In this document: piece by piece, positions 57,393 to 64,000 of the stretch | How positions within the stretch are numbered: position 1 is the stretch's first letter | Layout: the number at the start of each line of letters is the position of its first letter | Program-made: the position numbers and the translations under genes | Origin: Dimorphilus gyrociliatus | Lineage: Eukaryota; Animalia; Annelida | Reading direction: 5' to 3' | DNA: 64,000 nucleotides | Assembly (NCBI GenBank): GCA_904063045.1 | Contig: CAJFCJ010000007.1 | Location: 3,169,404 to 3,233,403 of the forward strand | The notes under the pieces: generated by a model | What the model saw: only the letters and a program-made list of their open reading frames with translations | Told to the model about the DNA's origin: nothing | The model's database searches: none

Positions 57393-59154
57393 TTAGGTTA
57401 TAACATCGTCATAAGAATTCGGTCTTCTCCTATAGGGATCCATATCATCTGGTAAGTCTAAACTCCAATTTCGATGTGGTTTGTCGGCATCTTCGTCAAA
57501 TTCGTCTATTGTTGGATGGTTACTTCGCCCTTTGCTTGAATACGAATTCTCATAATCGTATTGACGGGGAGTATCATAGTCATCTTGTCCTATTTTGTTA
57601 TTTTTTAGTCTAAAGCGTCCTTTTTTCTTCTTTTTCTTACTGCGAGCCGAATCTGCACCGTCACTTTCATCTATATGAAGTGGCTCTAATTGACGTGGTG
57701 GTACTATACTTCGAGATTTAGTTAATGGTAAACCGGAAGAGTGATTTAAAGGAGGAGGAGTGGATGATCTTCTCCTTAACATTTCATCACTTCCGAAAGG
57801 CCTATTTCTAGGAGAGTAGTTCTAAAAAGAGGGAAGCAAATAATTACGTATTTAAACCCTATGGAGCAAGTATTGATTTTGTTCCATTATATAAGAGTTG
57901 AAATTAATGTACCTCTTTGTGTTGAGAGCGTCGCTTAAAAGAATCCTTCCTACGTGAATAATCGGGTGAATCAAGACGTGTATCTTCGTCGTCATCATCT
58001 CTAAAGCCATTAGTTTCTCTCTCTCTAGCCTCTCTGCAAAATTATCAGTAATTAGAATCTTTCGCGGATTCACTAATATAATTTAAGACTACACCTTTCC
58101 TCTTTATTTAATCGAGCACGAGCTTTTTTCTCTTCAAATTTCCTAGCTTCCTCGGCCTTATGTTCTTCATTTTGTCTTTTAACTCGTGAATCAAGATCCT
58201 CCCATCTTTGATGAATTATTGCAATCATCCAACAAAGTCCCTGTTTTTATTTTAAAAGACTTTACTTTAAATTATTAAACAGTATTCTAAAAGCTTCACT
58301 TTGTAGATTGCAGGATCGACTTTTTTTCCAGTTCCATACGATATTGCACTACATAGTTCAATTCTACTTGGACATTTCACTTTGAAAACAGTATCCTCCA
58401 CATGTAATGCAGTGCAAATGTCCATTTCATCCATTGCTCCTGCTTTATCTTGTTTATTGGCTAAACTGTATGAAAGTAGAGGAGATTGTTTTTTATTTGG
58501 GTGGAAACCTAATACATTATAGTACACATACAATAAGATCGGTTTTTCGCGTACTCTCTGATCTCTCAGTAATTCATTTAATACCTCTCGGCATTCTGTT
58601 ACTCTTTCTGAGTCACTGGCATCAATCACAAATATTATACCATAAATTTCAGAAAGGTAATTTTTCCAAATACTTCTAACTCTCTTTCCTCCTCCTAAGT
58701 CCATTAATCTATGTAACAATTGAATAACATAATTAATAGTTTTCTTTTAAGTGTAATAATTATTGACAAGAAAAAATTATGAATTATATATTTACTTTAT
58801 CTGTTGTTTACCAATCTTAAAGTCGTTGTTGCTAAAACCAACAGTAGGCGCAGGATTATGGTCTTTTTCCCCTGATAAGCCAGTTGACATGACTGTTTTC
58901 CCTGCATTGTCAAGACCCAACACGGCAATAGGAAGTGCCCTATAAATGATCAATAAAAATAAATATTTTTAAATAACCTTATAAATTCTTTATTGATAAG
59001 TAGTCTCTATCTATCTGGACGGTTGTTTGTTTACTAGCATGCATTGAAAGAGAACGTAACGACAAGAAAAAACATAAGAGTACATGTTATCTTACTTAGT
59101 AACAGCTTCTCTGTTCCCTTCTCGGCGACAGCAAGTATAACAGAGGCTAAACAT
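57393..59154 (-). CDS. ARL13B: ADP-ribosylation factor-like 13B (ciliary GTPase)
   Basis: MFSLCYTCC (palmitoylation site), LGLDNAGKT, APTVGF, DLGGGKRVRSIWKNY, LANKQDK, then a coiled coil and Pro-rich tail. Confidence 0.93.
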
Positions 59155-59442
59155 GACCACTTTGAGTCAAAAAACGTTACTCTTTCTCGAAAAATTAATA
59201 CGTATCAAAGTAGGTGAAAAGATACTTCTAAAACGTGATGGAATGTTACGAAAAATCTTGAAGTATCGCTCAAAGGAGTAATAAAATTAAGAAGGAAACA
59301 AATATGTGCTCAAATACGAACTGTCGATTAGCCTTGTGCGATAATTCGGATTTACAGTTTCCCATTATTTCATCCTCGGTTCTAACACTCCTAAAACCGT
59401 TCGAGTGGCTTTCTGTTTATGTCGAGGTGTTACAGCGCCATA

Positions 59443-59456
59443 TTTGTTATGGCAAC
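59443..59456 (+). promoter_or_regulatory. Degenerate RFX X-box in the ARL13B/TARS1 shared promoter
   Basis: TTTGTTATGGCAAC has a perfect ATGGCAAC half-site, ~290 nt upstream of the ARL13B ATG. Confidence 0.35.
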
Positions 59457-59514
59457 GAGTAAACGGTTTCAAACGGTCACATATCCTGAAACCGCTCGTA
59501 CATGCGTATAAAAT

Positions 59515-62500
59515 ATGGCTGCCAACGTGGAGAAACCGCTGAAAAGCATGAGTTTGGATGACGCGAAAAAGGCACGAGTCTTTTAATTGTTGAATTTCTA
59601 AGGAGTTAAAGATTCGATATTTATGCTTTTTCGCTCATTATCGCGTTATTTTCATCGGATAGGATCCTTTAGTTTTCGGGCAATGAGTTCGGTTCGTTCG
59701 ATTTCCTACGTTTTCATCAAATATCAAAATCGATCAAACCCTATATTTTACTCCTAGACTTAAATCCTTTCATTAATTCGAAATATTAGTGGAATTTGAT
59801 TAATATCATTGTTTTATTATGCTTTGCCCGTCTCACATTTTTCCCCAATTACTTCGTTCGTTTTCTACTCTATACTATAGGATTTGGTTTTATTTCTTTG
59901 TTTTTTAAAGATATCATTAATTATCAAGGTCGGAATAATGCCTGAAAATACTTTGTACACTTAGAAAGCTTTTAGTATATTTGATAATCTTTAATTACTC
60001 TTGACTACTGATTGCATCATATATTGCGTCAGAATGACTGTTATATAAGATGAATTTTACCTATTTACTTTATTCATTTGTGCATAGAGTTTTGGCTTTA
60101 ATAGCTGTTAATTACATACAAGATGAGTTTAGAACATTGCTTTGCGCAAATAGAGGTATTTAACAAAATTAGCGTTTCTAACAGGGGAAAAAGCTAAAGT
60201 GCAGACTTATACTTTTAATATAAATCCATGTTTACCATTTTCACTTTATTGAATTGAATAGGTAAAAATTTTTTTTGTACAGGGTGGAGAGGTTAAGCAG
60301 TCTTTCCCGACTGAAGTAAGTAAACTCTATGAATATTTTATGTATACTTTATTAACATAAGTCTTAAATCCATAGATGAACCCCCCACCGGAGTATCTTA
60401 GCGAAAGGCTGCAATTGTGGGACAGGTTGAAAAAAGAGCACGATGAATGGATCTTAAAACAAGATCAAAAAGATATAACTGTTACTTTACCAGACGGCAA
60501 GCAAATTCCTGGTAAATCATGGAAAACTACGCCTTACGAAGTTGCAGCTTCTATAAGGTAATTTATATTTACGAATAGTAAAATAATAGCTAATCTTAAA
60601 ATAGGTAATCTTATAGAAATATAACTTGAAAAAGCTATTATTTTCTGTTATTAAATAGCATTATTATTATACTAGTATTATGCAATCATCCTATCTCTCC
60701 TTTTATATTAAAGATTTCTGGTTAAACAATTTTTATTTTGTAATAAAATTTATGTGCTAAAGTCAAGAGATTATATATTAATAATTAACACAGCAAAGGC
60801 CTAGCCGATAATACAGTTGTAGCGAAAGTAAACGATCAACTATGGGATTTAGATAGACCTTTTGAAGGCGATAGCTCTTTAAAACTTTTAAAGTTTGATG
60901 ACAAAGAGGGAGAATACGTATTTTGGCACTCGAGTGCTCATATGTTAGGGGAAGCTATGGAAAGACATTACGGTGGATGCTTATGTTACGGCCCTCCGAT
61001 TGAAGAAGGTTTGTTTCTTCTGTTGCGTAGCTATTCGACTACAAATACATTGTAGTTCCATATTTGTTTGCATGACATACTATAATCTATTGCCAAACAA
61101 TGATGTACATTAGAATTTACTATCAATTAGAATTATTAAACAATAGTAATATTTATGTTATTTATTCCAATTAGGTTTCTACTACGATATGTTTATTGAT
61201 AGTAGACAAGTTTCGCCTAACGACTTCAAGCACTTAGATACAATCATTAAGGGAATTCAAAAGGAGAAGCAACCATTTGAAAGGCTAGAAATGAAGAAGG
61301 AAGACTTGTTAGAAATGTTTAAATACAACCAATTTAAACATAGAATTATAAAGGAGAAAATAAATACTCCTACTACTACTGTCTACCGATGTGGTCCCTT
61401 GATTGATTTATGCAGGGGTCCCCATGTTAGACATACTGGTAAAGTTAAGGCTCTTGCTATTCATAAGGTACTTAGATAATGACTTGTTAAATCATTGATG
61501 TTGTATTCATTTCCTTATTTTTTAAAAATTGAATATTGATAGAATTCGTCTACTTATTGGCAAGGAGACTCGAACGCTGAAACTCTACAGAGAATCTATG
61601 GCATTAGTTTTCCCGACAGTAAACAATTAAAGGAATGGGTTAAGTTTCAGGAAGAAGCCAAGAAAAGAGATCACAGGAGACTTGGCAAAGTAATCTATAA
61701 TATTTATATATAATTTTTGTTGTTGATTGAACTTTTTTTCCAATCAGGAACAAGAGTTGTTTTTCTTCCACGAATTGAGCCCTGGTAGTTGTTTCTTCTT
61801 GCCTAAAGGAACTTTTATTTACAATACTTTGATGGAATTTATAAAGGTTCTTAAATTATTATAATAGATTTTATAATAATGCTTTTATCATTTGACTATA
61901 TATAGGAAGAATACTGGAAAAGAGGTTTTCAGGAGGTGGTCTCACCAAATATGTATAATGTTAAACTGTGGGAACAATCAGGTCACTGGCAACATTATGC
62001 TGTAAGTTATCATTAAAATATTATGTATAAATAGAATATAGATCTTTCGAATAATGGATAATTGATATACTATATAATATGCTGATTACTAATTACTGAT
62101 ATATTCTTTGTTCCATATAAAAGGACAATATGTTCCACGTAGACGTTGAAAAAGAAAAGTTTGCTTTAAAACCAATGAATTGCCCAGGTCACTGGTAAGA
62201 ATAATATATTCTCATATAGATTTATACGAAATAAGTGTCGCGTAAGATTTTATAAATCCATTTCCTATTCTAGTTTGATGTTTGATGTTCGTCCAAGATC
62301 TTGGAAGGAACTTCCATTAAGATTAGCTGATTTTGGAGTCCTGCATAGAAACGAACTGTCTGGTGCTCTATCTGGTCTCACTAGAGTTAGACGATTTCAA
62401 CAGGATGATGCTCATATCTTCTGTCGACCAGATCAAATCAAGGAGGAGATAAACGGTTGCCTTGATTTTTTGAAAAGCATTTACGATGTTTTTGGATTTA

Positions 62501-63323
62501 CATTCCACTTGAACTTATCTACCAGACCCGAAAAGTTTCTAGGAGAAATTAGTATGTGGGATGAAGCCGAAAAGCAGTTGGAGGAGAGCTTAAATAGCTT
62601 TGGTGCAAAGTGGGACTTTAATCCTGGAGATGGTGCGTTTTACGGACCAAAAATCGATATTACGATCAAAGATGCTTTGAAGAGATCGCATCAATGCGCA
62701 ACTATTCAGTTAGACTTCCAGCTTCCGATTAGGTTTAATTTATCATATGCCAGGTTGGTTATTATTACAGTCTGACGTACTTTTTAGATTTAAATATCTT
62801 GATATTTCTTAGTGGTGAAGGTCAAAACGAAACCAAACCAGTTATGATTCACAGAGCAATTTTGGGTTCTGTTGAAAGAATGATTGCTATTTTATGTGAA
62901 AACTATGCTGGAAAATGGCCATTCTGGCTATCACCAAGACAATGCCTTATTGTTCCAATTGGACCTGTTTTTGATGAATATGCAAAGTTCGTTGGTAAGA
63001 GTATTCGCGATGCTGGATTTCAATGCGAAGTTGATTTAGACGACGGTACTACAATGAATAAGAAAATAAGAAATGGACAATTATCTCAATTCAACTTCAT
63101 TCTTGGTATGGAAGAACACATATTACATGTAGATGAGTCTTCATTATCTATCTAAAAATTATTTCTATTTTCAGTTGTCGGTCAAAAGGAGAAGGACAAC
63201 AATACTGTTAACGTTAGAACCAGAGATAACAAAGTTCATGGAGAGAGGTCAATTGAAGAAGTTATCGAGAGATTTAAGGAATTTAAGAAGACTAGGATTC
63301 TTGATGCAGAAGAAAAATTCTAA
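59515..63323 (+). CDS. TARS1: Threonyl-tRNA synthetase with alternative cytosolic (59515-59571) and mitochondrial (59623-59691) first exons
   Basis: TGS domain [87 protein letters not shown]. Confidence 0.97.
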
Positions 63324-64000
63324 AGAAAAAACACCATGTCAGCCTAATTATTAAACTTTTATCATTAATAACTATTCTAAGAAAGTGAAAAAAATAACAA
63401 CAAAGTATTTCCTATATGAATTGAGATTCCAACTAACCAATTTTCTATTTCTCTTCTTACCAACCATTGCTTAGGTTGCGATTTAAATGAACAACAGAAA
63501 CATTACGATCATTTAATTAAATTTTCCTGGAAATACTTTCTGTTTTCTTTTCCTTTTCTTTTGGGAATTAATAAAAGTATGCACATGGAATAAAAGTTTA
63601 ACGTGGAGTGGTTATAAATCTAAATTATTTTTTTAAACTCGTATAAATAATATATCTATAAATAGCTCCATAAGAATATTATAATTAGGATAGAGGGTAC
63701 TAAAAAAATTAAATTACTCTAACTCTAGTTGGTTAATTTTTAAGTCACCTGAGTATGGAGATAGTTATCGCAGCCTATCTTAAACGAAATTGCCGACCTT
63801 GACACTACAAAAACTGGTTGAACATTTTAGTTCGATGCTAAGTAGAACTTCATAATCGCAAACATTAATATAGTCTGCAACTAAATTTGGTGTTTAAGAC
63901 TTTCGATTGTGATATTATTTGGAGAATTTAGGTTTTTTGTTTTTAGGAAAGAGTCAGAGTGCTATGCTTTAAGCATTATTGTCATTCGCTCACGTGGAAG

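Follow-up and report, generated by a model that had tools for sequence, protein, structure and literature searches.

We consider it likely that the threonyl-tRNA synthetase (ThrRS) gene found in a 64,000-nucleotide stretch of Dimorphilus gyrociliatus contig CAJFCJ010000007.1 (the window, whose positions are used throughout) has two alternative 5′ splice sites in its first exon, and that these form a cytosolic/mitochondrial switch in a TARS1-type gene, with a layout dating back at least to the protostome ancestor. Three parts of this were seen directly: the GC-AG junction of the cytosolic form in D. gyrociliatus, the junction of the presequence exon (1b) with exon 2 together with its read-through leader in a dinophilid relative, and the layout itself in three phyla. 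The gene has the two products that characterize a single-gene dual ThrRS, differing at the N-terminus and one of them bearing a presequence, the 1b junction being that of the relative.

In the mechanism we propose, a cut at the weak GC donor 59571|59572 would join a 19-codon cytosolic N-terminus (exon 1a) with exon 2. When this donor is skipped, the 1a frame would stop four codons later and become a short upstream open reading frame (uORF), and AUG 59623 would open a 23-residue amphipathic, Arg-rich presequence; spliced in frame to exon 2 through the donor 59691|59692, it would yield the mitochondrial enzyme. The strength of the GC donor is probably kept at an intermediate level that allows both forms to be produced, and the uORF would further damp translation of the mitochondrial form.

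Two 5′ splice sites ahead of a common second exon

Transcript evidence for the window consists of assembled contigs from three sequencing runs (X1, X2, and X3); run X3 is evidently RNA, its contigs being spliced. The coding part of exon 1a (59515–59571, plus strand, phase 0) comprises 19 codons for the cytosolic N-terminus and ends in AAG|GCACGA, as the original prediction had read it. It cannot be extended upstream because an in-frame TAA stands at 59509–59511, just 5′ of ATG 59515, whose context is aaaatATGg. The GC donor (AAG|GCACGA, 59569–59577, plus strand, cut 59571|59572), which had been proposed from the letters of the DNA, proved to be real: in X3 the contigs hold a joint 59569->60281 with three ambiguous bases, which, given the AG acceptor, we read as 59571|60283. 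The intron removed (59572–60282, 711 nucleotides) is thereby GC-AG and, with GC at +1/+2, AG at the 3′ end, and excision from the mRNA, of the U2 type. A minor, U12-type intron, with the donor /RTATCCTT and its branch-site consensus, was ruled out by the donor GCACGAGT. The GT at 59578 (CGA|GTCTTT) is indeed the sole GT nearby and, considered as a donor, is used by no contig joint.

GC donors are usually compensated by consensus bases at the remaining donor positions. The compensating form AG|GCAAGT is absent from this non-canonical site, with C or T at +4 and A at +6 in all seven protostome sequences, and under the standard U1 pairing scheme pairing is possible only at −2, −1, +1, +3, and +5. 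These mismatches suggest that the GC donor is intrinsically weak. With T in place of C at +2 the site would be a good GT donor; with any other base it would be dead.

If the GC donor is left unspliced, the 1a frame runs on through ARVF and stops at 59584–59586, which would make a uORF of 23 codons ahead of the mitochondrial ATG; this consequence of bypassing the donor had been foreseen and is borne out by the sequence. The segment 59572–59622 (plus strand) is therefore both intron of the cytosolic form and 5′ leader of the mitochondrial form, and consists of the uORF tail followed by 36 nucleotides without an ATG.

The coding part of exon 1b (59623–59691, plus strand, phase 0) opens with the predicted ATG and ends TCG|GTTCGT after 23 codons of a predicted mitochondrial presequence. 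Its peptide is, as described beforehand, Arg-rich and free of acidic residues; it has four Arg, six Ser, no Asp or Glu, and a helical hydrophobic moment of 0.75. We weighed whether 1b might be a chance open frame in an AT-rich intron whose likeness to a presequence is accidental. AT-rich non-coding DNA does tend toward acid-poor peptides, and about 8% of the 23-codon ATG frames in the window lack Asp and Glu and have at least four Arg plus Lys. Both strands of the window hold 2108 ATGs, 606 of them with 23 open codons, and six of these lack Asp and Glu and have at least four Arg; the combination of these criteria with a hydrophobic moment of 0.75 is reached by 1b alone among all 2108. In the relative, a full-length ThrRS mRNA encodes a protein that begins with this peptide, which refutes a chance frame, and the peptide aligns with annotated presequence exons of other phyla, so that we regard such an accident as having practically no likelihood.

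The GT donor of the mitochondrial form (GTTCGT, 59692–59697, plus strand, cut 59691|59692) resembles constitutive donors of the same gene (GTTTGT, GTTCTT, and GTTGGT), and the identical hexamer follows the 1b open reading frame of Capitella. A third start, 1c (60123–60155, plus strand), consists of 11 codons, the first of them ATG, with the donor GAG|GTATTT at 60155/60156. Exons 1a, 1b, and 1c are all in phase 0 with respect to the acceptor at 60282/60283, as had been claimed. This acceptor, ttttttttgtacag|, reads ...gtacag|GGT, is common to all three donors, and opens exon 2 (60283–60315, plus strand, 33 nucleotides, 11 residues, phase 0), which is placed by contig joints. The four joints to exon 2 suggested for checking fared unevenly in the X3 contigs: 59571->60283 and 60155->60283 are present, and none was found from 59577 or 59691.

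The relative's mRNA and conservation across phyla

The spliced mitochondrial form was found in a dinophilid relative, where the 2485-nucleotide Logan transcript contig L001 (SRR31837527) encodes a protein of 708 residues (P0155). Its N-terminus is the 1b peptide, with 21 of 23 residues identical, followed by homologues of exons 2 and 3; exon 2 (L001:151-183) is joined directly after codon 23 of 1b. The expected splicing of 1b to exon 2 thus stands on the relative's mRNA, while the joint 59691|60283 was not assembled in D. gyrociliatus run X3. L001 aligns to the window from 59542 and shows, in order, the last 30 nucleotides of 1a, the GC site, the TAA, a 36-nucleotide spacer, and the 1b ATG. 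The GC site is unspliced and identical to that of the window (AAAAAGGCACGAGTC), and the homologue of 59572–59622 is L001:31-81. The tail of 1a on L001 holds an in-frame AUG (the homologue of 59548) and the stop ahead of the presequence AUG, so that the tail of a terminated 1a frame stands before the mitochondrial start on an actual transcript.

To gauge constraint between the two dinophilids, the third codon positions of exons 3–12, of which 38.7% differ between window and relative, served as the reference rate; protein identity over the same exons is 92%. The segment 59542–59691 has 8 differences in 150 positions (P 2e-21 against the third-position rate), which is also below the overall coding difference rate (P 3e-5). 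Its non-coding part, 59572–59622, has 2 in 51 (P 8e-9), and the third positions of 1b have 1 in 23 (P 2e-4), both against the third-position rate. By this comparison, constraint on the nucleotides of the entire switch region exceeds what coding would require.

Two kinds of N-terminus recur among 120 orthologues, an acidic one (MADNV...MS..K) and a presequence, the mollusc version of which is ML.R.NL.RL.KRIG..Y.RAMS. The first exon of ThrRS in annelid, mollusc, brachiopod, tick, bee, and fish, with the pattern MA(D/A)NV...MS..K, is a homologue of exon 1a (alignment A5). Exon 1b is homologous to the N-terminal exon of RefSeq mitochondrial-type isoforms in molluscs and arthropods; exons with the pattern ML.R.NL.RL.KRIG..Y.RAMS in Capitella, Patella, Haliotis, Littorina, and Crassostrea align with it (alignment A4), and it shares their conserved R-A-M-S end.

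Genomic first exons were read in D. gyrociliatus and five more species, together covering annelids, molluscs, and arthropods. Exon 1a has 19 codons in D. gyrociliatus (AAAAAG|GCACGA, with 51 nucleotides from the donor to the presequence ATG), Capitella teleta (AACAAG|GCACGA, 47 nucleotides), Patella caerulea (AAGAAG|GCACGA, 43 nucleotides), and Dermacentor variabilis (GAAAAG|GCACGA, 50 nucleotides), 20 codons in Crassostrea angulata (AAAAAG|GCATGA, 34 nucleotides), and 22 in Bombus terrestris (GACAAG|GCATGA, 57 nucleotides). In all six species the 1a frame stops one to seven codons past the donor and the next ATG is that of the presequence, preceded in the five species other than D. gyrociliatus by an ATG-free stretch of 23–51 nucleotides. 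All six likewise have 100–125 nucleotides between the two AUGs, a purine at −3 and a G at +4 of the 1a start, which is a strong context, a presequence open reading frame of 23–24 codons ending at a GT donor, both donors in phase 0, and a normal AG before exon 2. The motif AAG|GCA(C/T)GA stands at the homologous place in seven of seven protostome sequences (alignment A6).

Use of both donors is reflected in the records of several of these animals. RefSeq has the presequence form as an isoform in Crassostrea (P0170), Bombus (P0183), and Dermacentor (P0210); for Patella, it exists as a model deposited under the name "hypothetical protein" (P0166). In an oyster mRNA (L004), the last codon of exon 1a is precisely this AAG, i.e. 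the GC donor is used, and in the Capitella model P0180 the GC site is spliced across, with ...SKANK leading directly into exon 2. TARS1 of the fish Polypterus has AAG|GTAAAT at the end of the homologous exon and lacks a presequence open reading frame beyond it. Retention of C at +2 where both forms are needed, and GT where they are not, fits selection for intermediate strength. From these alignments, the switch layout dates at least to the protostome ancestor, and it looks like the ancestral protostome solution.

Several observations weigh against this reading. L001 begins inside 1a, does not reach the homologue of 59515, and has only the internal AUG 59548 evident. This would suit an alternative promoter, in which the mitochondrial mRNA starts inside 1a, 3′ of AUG 59515, so that the choice is transcriptional and the full 23-codon uORF is absent; nothing upstream of the 59542 homologue is evident on L001, and the tight promoter region is shared, head to head, with an Arl-like GTPase gene. 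Against such a promoter, L001 starts exactly one assembly word (30 nucleotides) before the GC site, as a graph branch at shared upstream sequence gives. The assembly graph therefore probably branches there, which suggests that the GC donor is probably used in the relative too. Neither the spacing of only 100–125 nucleotides between the AUGs in six species nor the conserved GC donor would be required by a separate start site, and the 30 nucleotides of 1a on L001 already hold the in-frame AUG 59548, which opens a uORF of 12 codons. We hold a transcriptional choice to be unlikely on these grounds. L001 could also be chimeric, which could inflate the apparent 5′ conservation and could not create the 1b–exon 2 junction, and the vertebrate contrast comes from one species, Polypterus.

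The remaining points concern D. gyrociliatus itself. The joint 59691|60283 is absent from the X3 assembly, the sole D. gyrociliatus transcriptome that covers the region, in which contigs drop rare variants. X3 contig 12 passes 59691 unbroken to 60155 and is the only contig giving depth at 59670–60131, so that 60155 is the donor used by such read-through RNA as was observed in D. gyrociliatus. A word search with P0155:1-150 returned no dinophilid N-terminal fragment, the best match having 68% identity. The 59691 donor might thus no longer be used in D. gyrociliatus, read-through RNA being cut at 60155 and the mitochondria supplied by the 1c form, by the exon-3 AUG, or by weak, ambiguous targeting; this agrees with an X3 assembly that holds only 59571|60283 and 60155|60283 and with a public model that uses 1c. 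What speaks against such a loss is that the 1b ATG, open reading frame, and donor are intact and differ from those of the relative far less than synonymous sites do, a pattern that needs selection on each of the two lineages, and that GTTCGT is identical to the Capitella donor. The 1c peptide, moreover, is acidic, lacks a homologue, and lies behind several upstream AUGs, and rare variants are dropped from contigs. We therefore rate loss of the donor as very unlikely, and the preserved sequence points to use of 59691 in D. gyrociliatus as well.

A local RNA hairpin covers the switch in the dinophilids (59556–59642, 87 nucleotides, plus strand; −26.6 kcal/mol, z −4.1, none of 200 shuffles as good). 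It pairs 59563–59571, the last nine bases of 1a, with 59626–59634, and C+2 and A+3 of the donor with the UG of the presequence AUG. The relative's hairpin is weaker (−22.4 kcal/mol, z −2.0), its outer five pairs being lost, and the two spacer substitutions of the relative fall at unpaired positions; no compensatory change was found between window and relative, and the pairing is absent in Capitella, Patella, Crassostrea, and Bombus. A wider structure over 59500–59720 was considered and is not significant (z −0.5). Judged by its distribution in these sequences, the hairpin is a lineage-specific extra.

A bolder proposal would make GCAYGA a regulated donor, with a protein-binding site lying on the splice site itself (GCAUG/GCACG is what we take to be an Rbfox-type motif) and clamped in dinophilids by the hairpin. 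The isoform ratio would then be set tissue by tissue, raised for example in muscle or neurons, by a device kept since the protostome ancestor and lost in vertebrates after TARS2. We think it quite unlikely that the donor is regulated in this way. A search of Rfam over 58800–60500 gave one chance match only (E 0.8), and hence no known RNA in the long first intron.

Shared exons, the 1c start, and the neighbouring gene

Downstream of exon 2, exons 3–12 (60376–63323, plus strand) encode the TGS, tRNA_SAD, class II core, and anticodon-binding domains; exon 3 opens at 60376 with an in-frame ATG. The ten remaining introns are all GT-AG, 58–236 nucleotides long, and supported by contig joints. The product would have 704 residues with 1a, 708 with 1b, and 696 with 1c. 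The last intron is joined 63104->63174 in X1 and 63103->63174 in X2, there with one extra C between the two sides, which most likely means that the X2 lineage has a different base where the exon ends. At the start of exon 2, the first codon is GGT (Gly) in the genome of Crassostrea angulata (L003:3310) and AGT (Ser) in an mRNA of Magallana gigas (L004:61), so that the first exon base after the acceptor differs between these two oysters.

A profile search identified the public D. gyrociliatus protein DgyrCDS6428 (P0153, 696 residues) as the product of the window exons, to which it is identical from exon 2 onward; the relative's protein P0155 ranked next among its matches. The underlying alignment (A2) held four exons as rows of their own with a full-length scaffold, a Tupanvirus ThrRS; an earlier alignment of every exon against the full-length scaffold (A1) was discarded, as short exons were scattered. 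The representative library, clustered at 50%, collapses animal TARS1 and gave vertebrate, viral, and protist matches only, and was uninformative on N-termini. The domains of P0153 follow the order TGS (PF02824), the editing domain tRNA_SAD (PF07973), the tRNA-synt_2b core (PF00587), and HGTP_anticodon (PF03129); these four domains in this order identify the window enzyme as a eukaryotic class II ThrRS of the TARS1 type. Over exon 10, the worm enzyme is 83% identical to a vertebrate-like TARS1 sequence. The Tupanvirus ThrRS (P0021, P0151) is 65% identical to it over the same exon and is itself clearly of the eukaryotic TARS1 type.

The third mini-exon that had been suggested around 1c is supported in part. 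Its donor is used, with a joint 60155|60283 in X3, but a separate mini-exon is not supported: the contig with this joint is continuous over 59543–60153 and passes the GC site as well as the one at 59691. The peptide has no homologue among the 120 orthologues, and we take 1c to be a minor or cryptic donor picked by the annotation pipeline. DgyrCDS6428 begins at the 1c ATG and so lacks both conserved N-termini, 1a and 1b. Gene models of two other species also depart from the conserved layout. Those of Patella caerulea lack the conserved exon 1a (L002:3001-3057) and have MDEFTE at L002:5660 instead. The Capitella teleta model starts at an internal Met of 1a (L005:1977-2033), and the Capitella presequence exon (L005:2081-2152) is in none of the models seen. 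The analysis thus offers a correction to the public record for the unconserved, cryptic start in Dimorphilus, the missing 1a in Patella, and the internal start in Capitella.

The ThrRS gene lies head to head with a divergent Arl-like GTPase gene (58267–59445, minus strand), the 5′ exon of which (59321–59445, minus strand) is joined 59321->58938 in X1, X2, and X3; an alternative donor joint, 59095->58938, occurs in X3. Since X3 contig 11 spans 59321–59572, the 5′ ends of the two genes lie within about 70 nucleotides of each other or overlap. Over 59321–63500, runs X1 and X2 supplied coral metatranscriptome transcripts at least 99% identical to the window and a marine metatranscriptome form about 3% different. 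Dimorphilus-like worms occur in reef and marine community samples.

Known dual systems and the proposed switch

A separate mitochondrial ThrRS is absent in bilaterians except vertebrates (Pett and Lavrov, PMC4558845), which according to the literature regained one by duplication. On the strength of this work on bilaterians, D. gyrociliatus is expected to have no second ThrRS gene. The original prediction had called dual localization of ThrRS established in Drosophila; there, CG5353 is listed as cytosolic and mitochondrial on a Mitoprot prediction only (PMC4826098), while the experimental case is that of Caenorhabditis elegans, in which the single tars-1 supplies both cytosol and mitochondria (Guo et al., PMC10196762).

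The C. elegans gene resembles that of Dimorphilus in that an N-terminal presequence (Met1-Lys41, which imports GFP) is all that distinguishes the mitochondrial form, a short uORF stands at the first AUG, and far less of the mitochondrial form is produced (PMC10196762). In tars-1, however, both AUGs lie in one frame on one mRNA and the ribosome chooses between them, alternative splicing being excluded by the authors (PMC10196762), whereas in Dimorphilus the choice would lie between two 5′ splice sites, and the cytosolic reading frame would become a uORF. A further comparison is with Drosophila CG5353 and the "isoform X1/X2" pairs of mollusc and arthropod TARS1 in RefSeq, each with one acidic MADNV-type and one presequence-like N-terminus; the exons of these pairs, known as database models, are homologous to 1a and 1b.

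Other synthetases add or omit a presequence on the same principle, through alternative splicing or alternative initiation. Human KARS1 and GARS1 and C. elegans hars-1, as cited in PMC10196762, are different genes with different exon layouts, and zebrafish hars (excerpted from PMC5608375) is a dual-localized synthetase from one gene with a different exon arrangement; in the excerpts of this literature examined, no conserved non-canonical donor is reported for any of the four. GC donors are enriched in alternatively spliced genes, as stated in a portion of PMC2490688, and excerpts of PMC2490688, PMC7242645, and PMC3167603 present GC-AG introns as regulators of alternative splicing, GC being weaker than GT at an alternative 5′ site. 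The Dimorphilus donor departs from the usual GC donors in being uncompensated, with mismatches at +4 and +6 that are themselves conserved (GCAYGA) across phyla. Our literature search found no paper combining threonyl-tRNA synthetase with GC-AG, and the dual-targeting papers found make no mention of GC-AG. One-gene dual ThrRS is known, and many invertebrate genomes carry annotations of both N-termini as isoforms; the tandem layout, the GC donor, and its conservation were not found described in the papers searched.

If the switch operates as proposed, the GC donor would set the isoform ratio, a role for which its deep conservation argues, and the uORF would lower translation of the mitochondrial form, which should stay low because the start context of the 1a uORF is strong. 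The composition and amphipathicity of the 1b peptide suggest that the form bearing it would be imported into mitochondria.

How mitochondria obtain ThrRS in non-vertebrate bilaterians has been worked out only in C. elegans, and by a different route. The switch described here involves a rare kind of splice site, an uncompensated, non-canonical GC 5′ site whose bases are conserved from annelids and molluscs to one insect and one tick, in contrast to a fish with its own TARS2, which has a canonical GT at the same place. If the proposal is true, a single-base change from GC to GT should abolish the mitochondrial form.

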